From: Rebecca billardiae RCC1528
Taxonomy: Eukaryota > Protista > Haptophyta
Reading direction: 5' to 3'
DNA: 64,000 nucleotides
Assembly (NCBI GenBank): GCA_965240325.2
Contig: OZ251233.1
Coordinates: forward strand, 1,922,001-1,986,000
In this document: piece by piece, positions 50,231 through 57,481 of the stretch
Numbering within the stretch: the first letter of the stretch is position 1
Layout: each line of letters starts with the position of its first letter
The notes under the pieces: model-generated
Told to the model about the DNA's origin: nothing
Databases searched by the model: none
What the model saw: only the letters and a program-made list of their open reading frames with translations
Program-made: the position numbers and the translations under genes

Positions 50231-52462
50231 TCACCACTGGAAGGGGATGCGCTCGCGCAGCACGCGCGCGCCGCCGTTGATCCACTCGCTGCGCTGCACC
50301 CACAGCTCGTTCATCACCTCGCTCGAAGCGACGAGCGCGCCGCCGCGCCACGCGAGGCTCGCGCCGTCCGCCTTGCACGCCTCGGGCGCGTGCAGCACCT
50401 CGACGGCCACGGCCGGCTCGGGGCCGGCGCCGGAGGCGCGCGCGGGGGCGCCCGCCAGCCGTGCCGCGATGAGCGCGCGCAGGCGCGACGCGAGGCCGGG
50501 CGTCGCGCTGCAGCTGCCGCTGAGCAGGACGCAGCCGTACAGCTTCTGCCGCAGCTCAGGCCGGCCGTGCGCGCCGACCACGCGCACGACCGCCTCGTCG
50601 ATGCCCATCGCCTGCGTGTCGCACGCGCGGCCCGTTAGCGCGGAGAGAGTGTCCTCGTCGAAGGCGCGGCGCGCGGCGGCGGTGGGCGGCGGCGGTGCGC
50701 TCGCGGCGTGCTCGGCGGCGGCGCCGCCTTCGTCCACCTCCATCGCGCCGTCGGGCACGTCCGGCGAATCGCGCTTCCGGCTGCTCTCCGGAGCGCCCGG
50801 CTTCTCCCGCGGACCCTCTGGAGGGCTCTCGCGGGCGGCCGCGGCTGCGCCCTTGGCCGCACCGCCGCCGCCGCTTTCTCGGGGCTGCTGCTGCTGCTGC
50901 TGCTGCTGCTTGGGCTTGGCGTGGTGCGAGCGCGTGTCCGCCGCAATCTCCGTCGCGATCAGGTCGTCGAGGTAGTCGGAGTGGTCCACACTCGCGTGCA
51001 TCCACGGCGGCGGCAGCTCGCGCGCGGCCGACGCGCGCGCCTTCGCGCTGGCCGCCGCGGCCGCGGACGGCAGCGCGCCCGGCGCTCCTCCCGTCGTGTC
51101 GCCCGGCAGCGGCTGCAGCGCGCACGCTCGGAGCGCGCGGTGCTCGGCCCTCTGCAGCGGCGCGCGCAGTCGCGCGTCGAGCAGGACGAGCGGCGGCGCG
51201 TGCGTCGCGAGCGCCGAGAGCTCGCACTCGCCGCCGCTCGCCGCCTCGCCTTCCGAGCGCTTACTGGCACCGGCCGCCGCCGCCGCTCCGGCGGGCGTGG
51301 GCACAAAGCGCGCGCTCGCCAGCTCCGCCTCCGAGCGCGCGCGCAGCGTGCAGCGCGAGGCGCGCACCCAGCTCAGCAGCTGCATGTGCCGGGCATCGCG
51401 CGGGTCCAGCTGCAGACCGCCGAGCTCGGAGCGCCGCGGGCCGCCGAGCGACTCGGCGCCGAGCGTCGGCGTTGGCGCGTTGGCGGCACCGGCCGGCGCG
51501 CCCGCGGCCGTGCCCGCGCGCGCCGCGCCCCCCTGCGGCTCGTCCGCAGGCGCGGCGGCGGGCGGGCTCGGGAGGAAGGCGTCGAGCCACGCGTCGTGCG
51601 CGGAGAGCTCGCCGCGCGCCTCGGCGCCGAGCAGCCACAGCAGGTACGCCTCCACGTCGCGCCCTCCGAACGGCAGGCACGCGCGCGCGCGTGGCACACA
51701 CACGCCGTCGTCGACGGCCGCGACCTCGACCGTGTCCGCCTCCACCTCGACGACGCACGCCGCGGGGAGGCCGGCGCCGAGGGCGGCGCAGACGGAGCGC
51801 ACGTGGACGGAGAGCGCGCCGAAGCCGATCTCCGCGAGCACGTCGAGCATCTCCTTCACCTCGCGCCGCTCGAACGAGTCCGGGAGCAGCAGCAGGACTC
51901 CCATCGCGCCCAGCTCGGACGCGGACAGCTCGAGCACCTCGAGCAGCGCGTGCGACCAGAGCAGCCGCAGCGAGTCGGAGAGCTCGCGCGGCGAGAACGA
52001 GCGCCCCGGCGCGCCGTTCGCGCCGACGCCCGCGGAGCCCGCGTAGTTGAAGCGGCCGCGGCGCAGCGGGAAGAGAAGGTCGTACGGAGCGTCCGCTGGG
52101 AGCCGGCGCGCGGCCTCGCCACACAGCACCCGCGCCGAGGGCGGCGGCTCGTCCGTCGGCGAGCCGCGCCCGGCGTCTGCGGCGATGGCGGGCGGTGGGA
52201 TCGCGTGCTCCGCGCCGACGAGCGCCACCGGCGAGAGCTCGCGCAGCACCGCCGCGGTCGCGCCGAGCAGCTCGGCGTGCTCGGGCTCGGACGGCGCGGG
52301 CGGCACGGCTGGCGCGCTTGCCGGCTGGGCTGCGCAGTGTGCGCCGCGGCGGTAGGCGAGCACGTGCGGCACGGCGGTGGGCACCACGTCGGTCGCACGC
52401 CCGAGCAGCAGCTGCTGCGAGCCCGGCTGGAGCACGATTACCGAGTTGGCAATGTCGCCCAT
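50231..52462 (-). CDS. ARP8: Nuclear actin-related protein ARP8 (INO80 complex), 743 aa
   Basis: N-terminal VIVLQPGSQQLLLGRATDVVP..VPHVLA, FPLRRGRFN, LLLPD.F.R.EVKEM, and C-terminal AWRGG...ELWVQRSEWINGGARVLRERIPFQW match ARP8-type motifs. Confidence 0.85.
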   Translation of the reverse strand: MGDIANSVIVLQPGSQQLLLGRATDVVPTAVPHVLAYRRGAHCAAQPASAPAVPPAPSEPEHAELLGATAAVLRELSPVALVGAEHAIPPPAIAADAGRGSPTDEPPPSARVLCGEAARRLPADAPYDLLFPLRRGRFNYAGSAGVGANGAPGRSFSPRELSDSLRLLWSHALLEVLELSASELGAMGVLLLLPDSFERREVKEMLDVLAEIGFGALSVHVRSVCAALGAGLPAACVVEVEADTVEVAAVDDGVCVPRARACLPFGGRDVEAYLLWLLGAEARGELSAHDAWLDAFLPSPPAAAPADEPQGGAARAGTAAGAPAGAANAPTPTLGAESLGGPRRSELGGLQLDPRDARHMQLLSWVRASRCTLRARSEAELASARFVPTPAGAAAAAGASKRSEGEAASGGECELSALATHAPPLVLLDARLRAPLQRAEHRALRACALQPLPGDTTGGAPGALPSAAAAASAKARASAARELPPPWMHASVDHSDYLDDLIATEIAADTRSHHAKPKQQQQQQQQPRESGGGGAAKGAAAAARESPPEGPREKPGAPESSRKRDSPDVPDGAMEVDEGGAAAEHAASAPPPPTAAARRAFDEDTLSALTGRACDTQAMGIDEAVVRVVGAHGRPELRQKLYGCVLLSGSCSATPGLASRLRALIAARLAGAPARASGAGPEPAVAVEVLHAPEACKADGASLAWRGGALVASSEVMNELWVQRSEWINGGARVLRERIPFQW

Positions 52463-54098: not shown

Positions 54099-55793
54099 AG
54101 TCAAGTCGGTTGAGGTGCCCCCATCTCGGTGTGCGGAGGGCAAGTCGATGAGCAGCATTCAGCAGGTGGTGGCGCGCCTCCCCCGCACGCCGGCATAGTA
54201 ACCCCAGCCGCGCTACCCGCCGTTGGCAAGCACCCTCGCCACGAGGACTTAAACGACGACGGACGAGGACGATACTGATTACCGGCACGCGCGCGAAGAC
54301 GAGTTGGACGCTGTGACTGTGACTGGCAACAGAAGCTACTGTGACTTGCTCAGCTCGACGCCACCGTCCCGGGCGTCGTCACGTCGGCCTACGAAGTGAC
54401 ATCTCGGCCGGCGTCCCTGCGTTGGGCCTGCTGCAAGAGCCAGCGAACAGGTAGCTTAGCTGCGAGTGCCGCCGCCGCGCGGCGGTGCCTTTCTTGCGCT
54501 CTCCGCGCGGCAGTCGGAGACCATCAGCTTGGATGGGCCGGGCGAAGCCTCGTGCTCGGCACTTACGCCGCTTACGCCGCATGGGTGCCATACTCACCGT
54601 GCTCACACAGCACGGCTTGGTTATGCGTCGACACTGGTCAGTCTGAAGAGTGACGCCGGGACAGTGCCCCTATACTGCAGTGCCACTCGCAGCTGCGCGT
54701 GCTGCGGGTGCTACTGTCAGCTGAACGCGGCCTCGTGACACAGCAGGACGCACTCTGAGACTCTGAAGCATGGGAGTAGGCGAAGCTGCCAAAGCTCCAC
54801 CTATCTGCTTCTGCCGTGAACACGAGGAGCAGCCTGTGCAGCTTGGGCTCTCGACGTTCGACGTGCAACATCATGAGCATCATCATTGAAGCAAGTGCCT
54901 CACTGGCGCGGACGGGACTCACGACGATCGCGCGTTTGCACGGCCCTCGCATGGCAGCCTGACGCGACAACGTGCTGGCTATCTACTGAGCCTACTGGAG
55001 CCGTGATCGCTCGGCTCGCCGGCGCGCGTGTGTCCACAGGAGTGCTCAAGCCGGCGCAGCGGGCCGTGGTGCCGTGAGACTGAGCATACATGATGCGGCG
55101 TGAGCTGGCGTGAGGCTGTCAACATGGGTGGCATCAGCACAGGTGACAGCGCAGACAGGGACGGAACGCGTTACAGTGCGGACGGCGCCGAGGCGTAGGC
55201 GCTCGCGGGGGCGGCGACAGCGCGAGGGCAGGAGCGGGGACGGCGCAGCAGGGCCGAGGCGCCATGCTGGCTCCGGTGCGGCGGGCTTGAAACGGCCGGC
55301 CGCTTTTACTGGAAAGCGCCCGCCGCTCCGCGCCAGCGCGGAGCTCGCCAGAAAAGGCGGGGTCTCAACCCGCCAGCGCGAGGCTCTACCCGACCGGTAC
55401 CGGTATCCATAAAAATAAAAAGCCCTTGACGTTGCGAGAGTACTACTACTAAGTAAGCTGTCGATCGAAGATTCTCCTGCAACGTCAAGTTTGAAACACC
55501 GAATCCTTGTGTTTATAAATAACCAATTTTGGGGCTGTAGCGGTGTAAAACCCATGCCAAGGCATCCATTTCATGCAGGGATGAATATGGAACCGATTTT
55601 TACGGGTGACTCAATATGAGGATTACAAAACGACGGTTCAGGTTTAAGATTGGCTATCCATTATCCGTGGTATTGGGGAAAAGTGAATCGTCAAACGCGA
55701 TGACAAACACATCTTCACGTCTTCGCAACAAAACTTCGCGGCGGCGGCGCAGACGACGCATCAAGTCGATCGCTCTGCTCCGCGCTGCTCGGG

Positions 55794-57113
55794 ATGGACA
55801 CGCAGTCCTCCGCGCTACTCGTGTGCAGCGGCGCCTCCGCCGACGAGGCTGCCACCACGGAGGCCAAGATACGCGCGGCCGGATTCGCGCGGGTCGACGT
55901 CTCGTGCTCCTTCCTGTGCGCGCTCGAGGCGATCGACTCCGACGTGCGTGACAAGGGCTGCGTGGCGCACGCGCGCATCTTCTGCGACGTGGGCGCGTGG
56001 GAGGACAGCGCTGTCACCTTCTTGCGCACGCTCTTCTCGACCGGCTGGCCGGTCTCCATCGTGCTCATCGCTGAGCCTGCCGCATGCAACTCGTCGCCAA
56101 GGGCCCGAGCTGCGGCTGCGCTGCTCAGCTCCTCGACCGGCATCGACGGCATGCTCTCGCGCGACGCGAGCGCGCTCGAGTTCGCCGACCTTGCGTGGAG
56201 CGGCCTTCAAGGGACAGCCGGGCGCTCGCTCTTTGCTAGCGCCCCCGTCGGCCCCATGCTCACACGCTGCGGCTCAGACCGCAGCGAGGCCAGAATATCT
56301 CCGCGCGGCGTCGAGGGCTCCGGGGCGTTCTCGCGCGAGCGAGCTCGTCATGGGGACGTGATGCCAGGGGAGCAGATGGAGACGCATGCCATTGTGATGG
56401 GCTGTGCGCTGCTGCTCGAGCGGCTGCTCGCCGAAGGTGGCGGCGCGGACGCAGCGGTGGGGGCAGCGGCTGGCGGCGGCGGCAGCGGCATCGCGCTCAA
56501 GGCGCGATGCTCACGCTGTTCAACGGACAGCTCGTGCAACGCGTTCTTCACCTCGCGCGTCGATGATAGCCCGCGTGGCGCGCCATACCTCTCCGACGAG
56601 AGCGATGCGGAGGACGGCGGCTATTGCGAGTCGGCCCGCTCCCACGCATCCTCATCCGCCTCCTGCGCGAGTGGCAGCGACGCCTCGGCGTCCGCTGCAG
56701 ACGGCCCCACGTCTCCCTCCGCCGAGGCGGTGTACCGCTTCCTGCTCGAGCTCCAGCCTCAGCTGCAGCTTGGCAACTCGCTGCTGGTGGTCGTGGCAGT
56801 GTACTTGCAGCGGCTGTGCGCAACGCTGGGCGCAAGCTCGCTGCGCGCCCGATGGCGCGAGCACGTGGTCGGCGTGGCGTTGGTTGGGATCAAGGCGCAC
56901 TCAGACGCGCCGCCCACGCTGGGCGCACTGAGCTCGCGGCTTGCCATCTGGAACTGCGACGCACAGCAGCTGCGCCAGCTCGAGGCGACGGTGCTGCGTG
57001 GCCTCAGGTGGCACACGCTTGTGCGCGCGTCGCAGTACGAGGGCACGCGCATGCACCTACGCGTGCTGCACGAACGTAACGCGCTGCCCGCTCGCACACG
57101 GCAGCGAGCGTGA
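55794..57113 (+). CDS. Cyclin (cyclin-Y/PHO80-like box) with an N-terminal receiver-like domain, 439 aa
   Basis: C-terminal VYRFLLEL...VVVAVYLQRL...WREHVVGVALVGIKAHSD...LRQLEATVLRGLRW parallels the cyclin-Y box, with conserved K and E. The N-terminus has a REC-like beta/alpha pattern. Confidence 0.7.
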   Translation: MDTQSSALLVCSGASADEAATTEAKIRAAGFARVDVSCSFLCALEAIDSDVRDKGCVAHARIFCDVGAWEDSAVTFLRTLFSTGWPVSIVLIAEPAACNSSPRARAAAALLSSSTGIDGMLSRDASALEFADLAWSGLQGTAGRSLFASAPVGPMLTRCGSDRSEARISPRGVEGSGAFSRERARHGDVMPGEQMETHAIVMGCALLLERLLAEGGGADAAVGAAAGGGGSGIALKARCSRCSTDSSCNAFFTSRVDDSPRGAPYLSDESDAEDGGYCESARSHASSSASCASGSDASASAADGPTSPSAEAVYRFLLELQPQLQLGNSLLVVVAVYLQRLCATLGASSLRARWREHVVGVALVGIKAHSDAPPTLGALSSRLAIWNCDAQQLRQLEATVLRGLRWHTLVRASQYEGTRMHLRVLHERNALPARTRQRA

Positions 57114-57481
57114 GGCGTCATCACGCCGGAGCATCGCAATCAGTCAGCACCCGCAGCCCCGGCGCCGCGTGCCCCGCTGCTGGCTGGCTGATGCGCGATC
57201 ACGATGTCGATGACGATCGAGTAGCCTCCGTCCGTGCGGGTTGATGATGCTGCCGACAGAATGATGATACGGCCCGCTGTCGACTCGCTCTCGCGGCCCG
57301 CGGCACTGCATGGCACCGAAATCGGCGCGGGTGAGCGCGCCGGCCCGCGTATATATATATATGTATTATTCGTATATTCAATTCTAAGAGGCATAAAATA
57401 TGACCGCGTTCCGCGGTCCTTCCGTAAAACCAACGTAGTTAGGGGCCCGCGGTGCAACCTCCGTCGGCTGCTGTCTCAGTC

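Follow-up and report, generated by a model that had tools for sequence, protein, structure and literature searches.

A pseudo-receiver–cyclin Y fusion protein predicted in the haptophyte Rebecca billardiae

The gene and its surroundings

The whole 64-kb stretch of Rebecca billardiae DNA that was analyzed is called the window here, and positions are counted from its first base. The gene studied lies on its forward strand, and its organization and that of the encoded protein are as follows:

55400..55720, no strand: AT-rich intergenic stretch, probably the promoter region (read from the sequence)
55794..57113, + strand: complete single-exon coding sequence of 439 codons plus a stop codon (ORF listing, codon periodicity)
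55806..56207, + strand: pseudo-receiver domain (REC, CheY-like), residues 5 to 138
56208..56363, + strand: disordered linker, residues 139 to 190 (pLDDT 24 to 29)
56364..56435, + strand: conserved pre-cyclin helix, residues 191 to 214 (helix in the AlphaFold2 model; H198, M202 and G203 invariant in the family)
56439..56708, + strand: Ala/Ser/Gly-rich insertion, residues 216 to 305 (alignment gap in all relatives; pLDDT below 35; composition)
56721..57083, + strand: single cyclin box of the cyclin Y type, residues 310 to 430 (phmmer, family profile, Foldseek)
57340..57440, no strand: AT-rich stretch with a (TA) run 3' of the stop codon, probably the 3' end region (read from the sequence)

The window is very GC-rich, and long chance ORFs were found in every frame. 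The length of an ORF is therefore no proof of coding by itself, and we relied on the GC content at the three codon positions, which is. Across the 439 codons, these values were 0.68/0.59/0.83. GC3 was the highest of the three in nearly every 30-codon block of the ORF and reached 0.87 to 0.97 over the first 75 codons. GC1 exceeded GC3 only at residues 181 to 225; this region is rich in Gly and Ala, and the excess is as expected of Gly/Ala codons, not a sign of an intron. A hidden in-frame intron in the low-complexity insertion was also considered and found to be unsupported, since GC3 was highest over most of the insertion. The ORF contained neither a stop codon nor an AT-rich break, and the in-frame sequence upstream of it reached a stop codon without an earlier ATG. 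An independent Logan contig from run ERR14847148 was 100% identical over 2,076 bases including the gene; a second run, ERR14847151, contains this contig as well. As predicted from the DNA, positions 55794 to 57113 thus correspond to an intact, intron-free gene. Could two genes or exons have been joined here by a chance open frame? The abundance of long spurious ORFs in all frames and the lack of homologues for residues 139 to 190 and 216 to 305 would be in keeping with such an artefact, but we consider it very improbable: the codon periodicity keeps one frame across the linkers, no internal stop codon or AT-rich break interrupts it, and the single complete transcript ORFs of relatives (see below) share the order of receiver, H..MG helix and cyclin box.

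The GC content per 500-base bin was 0.654 at 55000 to 55499 and 0.572 at 55500 to 55999, and the bins within the gene gave 0.706 and 0.690. A sharp AT-rich island with (TA)7 was located at 57340 to 57400, directly 3' of the gene, with a counterpart upstream at 55400 to 55720. Such islands seem to mark gene boundaries in the Rebecca billardiae genome. A motif search found no E2F-type site near the gene, and the E2F-type motif TTTSSCGC occurred twice in the 64 kb, compared with about 12 occurrences expected from shuffled sequences. No second copy of the receiver-cyclin family was found within the 64-kb window.

Other ORFs in the window were also inspected. The ORF at 50231 to 52462 on the reverse strand has 742 residues, of which the last 125 or so matched Pfam Actin (E 1.6e-20) and the preceding 600 or so had no Pfam match; the alternatives are an actin-related protein that carries a long extension and an over-long ORF in GC-rich DNA. 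Two ORFs that overlap on opposite strands, 57452 to 58669 (+; 405 residues) and 57482 to 58519 (-; 345 residues), have a GC content of 74 to 79%, and neither had a Pfam match.

The cyclin box and the receiver-like domain

When the protein was compared with the PDB by phmmer, the sole meaningful match was human cyclin Y (9r2i_D, E 1.2e-3, residues 307 to 431). A profile of the family's C-terminal regions matched human cyclin Y over the whole box with an E value of 5.4e-26. This was the only match at E<=0.01; PHO80 and cyclins A, B, C, D, E, H, K and T were absent from the PDB matches at this threshold. In the full-length model, residues 310 to 430 formed a five-helix cyclin box (pLDDT about 80), for which the top Foldseek matches were 9r2i_D and 9r2n_D. 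With Pfam Cyclin_N, the whole protein scored 13.5 bits and the C-terminal piece, or box, alone scored 16.8 bits, below the cut-off of 23, and the protein by itself remained under every Pfam threshold. The chain ends at residue 439, nine residues past the last helix of the box, and therefore has a single box, as does cyclin Y (PMC13168255). In cyclin Y, K225 hydrogen-bonds the PCTAIRE helix of CDK16 and E253 pairs with helix a3 (PMC13168255). Both residues have counterparts here that are invariant in the family:

56892..56894, + strand: Lys367, aligned by phmmer with cyclin Y Lys225 in the CDK-contacting helix a3
56982..56984, + strand: Glu397, aligned by phmmer with cyclin Y Glu253 (helix a4; partner of the Lys)

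We infer that the surface bearing Lys367 and Glu397 binds a CDK, which the box would activate or target. Human cyclin Y needs an N-terminal segment and 14-3-3 sites to activate CDK16 (PMC13168255), and these have no counterpart here; a motif scan of this protein found no 14-3-3-type motif of the form Rxx[ST]xP or Rxxx[ST]xP. Together with the score of the box alone, which stays under the Cyclin_N cut-off, these differences would suit a protein in which the cyclin fold is a scaffold, not a CDK activator, and most of the function lies in the receiver-like domain. Such an arrangement appears quite unlikely, given that the family profile matches cyclin Y over the whole box (E 5e-26) and that the Lys/Glu pair contacting the kinase helix is invariant in the family.

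For the N-terminal region, a Pfam search with residues 1 to 150 gave no match, PF00072 being absent even at E 10, and phmmer of the same residues against the PDB gave nothing meaningful, with a ribosomal protein as the best hit (E 0.38). The ESM Atlas returned weak leads only, namely, unnamed clusters, OKR_DC_1_N, and Response_reg at about 0.90. A BLASTP comparison of residues 1 to 150 with the N terminus of the relative P0003 gave an E value of 5e-13, with 40% identity over residues 23 to 92, and an exhaustive HMMER search matched P0003 (E 2.4e-9) and P0004 (E 7.5e-9). When aligned by hhalign with a profile of four other receivers of the family, residues 5 to 93 matched with a probability of 97.7% (E 1.9e-12). 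Three of these four receivers match PF00072, two of them above its cut-off. The homology of this protein to PF00072 is therefore transitive, because there is no direct Pfam match and the connection runs through hhalign to relatives that match PF00072. With the N-terminal profile of the family, the PDB yielded receivers only: RpfC (4e-6), followed by CKI1, SLN1, CheY and ETR1.

AlphaFold2, supplied with a five-sequence alignment, modeled the N terminus as a (beta-alpha)5 flavodoxin-like domain (pLDDT 77, pTM 0.76). A Foldseek search with this model gave 43 matches at E<=1e-3, nearly all of them receivers, with TM scores of up to 0.79. Residues 94 to 140 (a4-b5-a5) are beyond the significant alignment, and their assignment to the receiver comes from the model only (pLDDT 60 to 79). 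According to the family alignment, 16 receiver positions are invariant across three subfamilies. Besides the hydrophobic core, the invariant positions make up two motifs specific to the family: D50, G55 and C56 within an insertion of 7 residues between a2 and b3, and W85-P86-x-S88, located before b4. The state of the active site is as follows:

55830..55838, + strand: b1-a1 loop G13-A14-S15, aligned with the canonical DDD in the family alignment; the metal-binding pair is lost
55986..55988, + strand: Asp65, the phospho-acceptor position at the end of b3, retained (alignments, including the RpfC profile alignment)
56070..56072, + strand: Ala93 at the Thr/Ser position of b4 (family and RpfC alignments)
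56160..56165, + strand: Arg123-Asp124 replacing the Lys-Pro of b5 (family alignments)

A profile alignment with the solved receiver of RpfC confirmed the columns of the acidic pair, the acceptor, the Thr/Ser and the Lys. Four of the five receiver-defining residues for phospho-acceptance are replaced, Asp65 being the sole survivor, and the acidic residues nearest to the lost b1 pair are D17 and E18 in helix a1. Phosphotransfer in CheY-type receivers requires Mg2+, which is bound by the acidic pair; the Thr and the Lys link phosphorylation with the change in conformation. With the Mg2+-binding pair and both switch residues lost, direct phosphotransfer, or His-Asp input, to this copy is unlikely judging from its sequence, with residual phosphorylation through the retained Asp65 being conceivable. 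The protein would thus be best named a pseudo-receiver–cyclin Y fusion.

A receiver that still works as a phospho-acceptor would have Asp65 phosphorylated by a relay protein, with, for example, Asp17 and Glu18 as metal ligands, and would connect a His-Asp relay directly to a CDK. Some features lean that way, since Asp65 is retained whereas two sister lineages have Ala or Glu at this position, Arg123 is a conservative replacement of Lys, and the positions of the lost acidic pair are followed, at a distance of two to three residues, by Asp17 and Glu18. However, none of the three b1-loop columns is acidic, the switch Thr is replaced by Ala, and Arg-Asp stands in place of Lys-Pro; moreover, receivers like FrzS that lack these residues bind neither Mg2+ nor phosphoryl analogues (PMC1974792). 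We therefore regard a working acceptor as improbable.

Relatives of the fusion protein

An exhaustive HMMER search of 1.84 billion representatives found 11 proteins with an E value of 1e-3 or lower. The N terminus was matched by P0003 (512 aa), P0004 (659 aa) and P0011, and the cyclin box by P0003, P0004 and P0002 (442 aa). The Pfam Response_reg cut-off of 30.2 was passed by P0003 (54.6 bits) and P0004 (48.4 bits). With Cyclin_N, these two proteins scored about 20 bits, and P0002 passed with 29.6 bits. P0002, P0003, P0013 and P0015 are MMETSP transcript ORFs, and P0004, with MMETSP/EukProt identifiers, comes from Pavlova sp. CCMP459 (Pavlovales). The complete MMETSP transcript ORFs P0002, P0003, P0004 and P0013 each contain both domains, so that the two domains are carried by one mRNA in related algae. 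The H..MG helix precedes the cyclin box in every family member. Members of this small receiver-cyclin Y family were found only in material from Pavlovales haptophytes, to which the family seems specific, and in unlabelled assemblies.

Other searches were also performed. A word-index protein search with the single sequence returned the sequence itself only; with the family alignment, it returned P0004 and the query only, probably being swamped by low-complexity words; and with the cyclin region of P0003, it added just the fragments P0018 and P0019. A metagenome scan with the family alignment yielded a single contig (L007), which was rejected as a family member: it encodes a GC-rich tandem receiver without a cyclin and is probably bacterial. 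Searching the ESM Atlas with P0003 revealed no cluster of 50 or more members that joins a receiver and a cyclin. In the searchable full-text literature, a paper describing a receiver-cyclin protein was not found, and the combination of a receiver with cyclin Y is apparently not described.

These results bear on a preliminary description of the locus, which had proposed a receiver-like domain fused to a cyclin Y-like box at about 56720 to 57060, in an architecture that it did not know as described. Homology, the models and the transcript ORFs of relatives all confirm that the two domains belong to one protein, and the searchable literature likewise holds no description of it. The same account had placed an Asp at the phospho-acceptor position, on which the family and RpfC alignments agree, and had reported the b1 acidic pair and the b5 Lys as absent, as is evident from G13-A14-S15 and Arg123 in those columns. 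The CheY-like fold and the existence of further receiver-cyclin proteins, both raised there as points to check, were borne out by the model and by the four two-domain transcript ORFs, respectively.

The relatives differ in their active sites. P0003 and P0004 keep DDD, the acceptor D, T and K. In a second subfamily, the acceptor is Ala in P0002 and Glu in P0007, and both keep the Lys. Since all receivers descend from forms with the canonical residues and one subfamily still has the full set, the predicted ancestor of the fusion must have had a working receiver; the active-site losses are read from these alignments as derived and independent between subfamilies. A genomic locus that belongs to the second subfamily and encodes Glu at the acceptor position was found in runs SRR30872635/6 (L005:1805-3036 and L006:308-1539). 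An intron separates the linker from the cyclin box at this locus, and the box is cut off by the end of the contig.

RxxSxP motifs are present on both sides of the cyclin box in P0003 and P0004/P0015, and P0013 is also among the relatives with such motifs. Judging from their setting, they could be chance matches in linkers rich in Arg, Ser and Pro.

P0005 and P0006 are 3' fragments that are 61 to 68% identical to the cyclin-box end. The sequencing runs that contain them also contain this gene, so that they are probably paralogues in the same genome. Both fragments have a GT-AG phase-1 intron after the Lys-Ala-His codons in the box, which is exactly absent here; P0018 has an unspliced insertion at the same position. 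With the exon pieces of the paralogues used as aligned codon blocks, the Nei-Gojobori dN/dS against the two fragments was about 0.4 to 0.5 over 81 codons, a small sample that suggests some constraint. The Logan contigs L001, L002 and L003 (1-400), which represent two paralogue fragments, all start at the codon of query residue 347, 69 bases before the GT-AG phase-1 intron. A stretch shared by the paralogues and breaking the assembly graph would explain this common start.

The comparison with the paralogues also raises the question of whether this copy is decaying. A functionless paralogue would have lost the intron, the receiver chemistry and the 14-3-3-type motifs after duplication, gained the insertion, and would now be drifting. 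The loss of catalytic residues fits such a course, as does the lack of RxxSxP motifs, unlike in the canonical relatives. No relative shares the 90-residue Ala/Ser/Gly insertion of this copy, which is also compatible with relaxed constraint; the paralogue intron is missing exactly, as expected of a reverse-transcribed copy; and a dN/dS of 0.4 to 0.5 does not indicate strong constraint. On the other hand, the 439 codons are uninterrupted and have a strong GC3 periodicity that is highest over the receiver. Both domains retain their hydrophobic core and the motifs specific to the family, the Lys/Glu pair is kept as well, both domains model confidently, and AT-rich promoter-like and 3' regions flank the gene. 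Decay is thus unlikely in our view.

Proposed role and comparison with known systems

We think it fairly probable that the gene is an intact, diverged paralogue encoding a pseudo-receiver and a CDK-binding cyclin Y box, in which the receiver acts independently of phosphorylation. The predicted two-domain protein has its pseudo-receiver at the N terminus and its single cyclin box at the C terminus, with disordered linkers between them, and has diverged within the Pavlovales receiver-cyclin Y family, whose ancestor had a complete phospho-accepting receiver. The sequence analysis shows the gene, the folds and homologies of both domains, the states of the residues and the family; binding to a CDK and the role of the pseudo-receiver are proposals. 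Its box may bind and activate, or target, a CDK through Lys367 and Glu397. Without the acidic pair, the switch Thr and the Lys, the receiver most likely accepts no phosphoryl group, and a phosphorylation-independent role of the receiver fold is favored because these residues are gone. The pseudo-receiver might dock partners, possibly relay proteins, the canonical paralogues or the kinase itself, or it might gate the cyclin box in the same chain.

The preliminary description had gone further and envisaged a direct link from two-component or clock input to CDK activation. For this copy, such a two-component link is not supported, with four of the five phospho-acceptance residues replaced; the mechanism is plausible only for canonical relatives such as P0003 and P0004, going by their DDD/D/T/K residues. 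The idea of a clock connection finds no support either, as the protein has no CCT domain (Pfam, E up to 10) or other feature of PRR/TOC1, and its C-terminal domain is a cyclin box. A broader scheme, which we offer as possible but doubtful, is that in Pavlovales, receiver-cyclin fusion proteins connect His-Asp phosphorelays directly to a CDK activator of the cyclin Y type. This copy would then be a phosphorylation-blind member that competes or pairs with the phosphorylatable paralogues for the kinase or a relay partner and sets a baseline of CDK activity that does not depend on a signal.

As a rule, cyclins are regulated through their synthesis, their destruction and phosphorylation on Ser/Thr. 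In His-Asp relays, the output switch is a receiver domain, which in most cases governs a transcription factor or an enzyme. A receiver and a cyclin in one protein would link environmental sensing to a cyclin-dependent kinase by a short path, in a group of algae that are of ecological importance and in which the control of the cell cycle has barely been studied. The family is also a natural comparison set, with canonical, Asp-less and Asp-only receivers on one cyclin scaffold, that can show the effect of the receiver on the cyclin. This copy itself is of less interest, its receiver most likely not being phosphorylated.

Human cyclin Y (CCNY) is an activator of CDK14/CDK16 and is N-myristoylated. 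It was the only solved protein matched by sequence (PDB 9r2i/9r2n) and was also the best fold match. The two proteins have in common a single box, the pair K225/E253 (K367/E397 here) and disordered flanks, and they are about 26% identical over 132 aligned columns (Foldseek). CCNY has no receiver domain, whereas the present protein has one. Conversely, human cyclin Y has RxxSxP 14-3-3-type motifs flanking the box and this protein has none; furthermore, it starts with MDTQ and lacks the glycine after the initiator Met that is required for N-myristoylation.

The canonical Pavlovales fusions (P0003 and P0004) share with this protein the domain order, the pre-cyclin helix, the receiver motifs (D..NGC loop and GWPxS) and the acceptor Asp. 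They differ from it in having DDD, Thr and Lys-Pro, in passing Response_reg, and in having RxxSxP on both sides of the box. Close relatives also have an intron inside the box, which is absent here. Compared with CheY-like receivers (PF00072; CheY, SLN1, CKI1 and RpfC), this protein lacks the acidic pair, the Thr/Ser and the Lys, and it has a longer a4 region as well as the family insertion of 7 residues between a2 and b3.

Plant PRR/TOC1 proteins have pseudo-receivers that keep the fold without the phosphorylation chemistry and serve as interaction modules. In FrzS of Myxococcus (PMC1974792), the receiver fold is likewise kept, the phosphorylation chemistry is lost and the domain is an interaction module, as is proposed here. 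This protein has neither a CCT domain nor a coiled-coil output (Pfam), and its relationship to PRRs and FrzS is that of a shared superfamily only. Whereas PRRs and FrzS have lost the acceptor Asp, the pseudo-receiver described here keeps this Asp and has lost the other residues.
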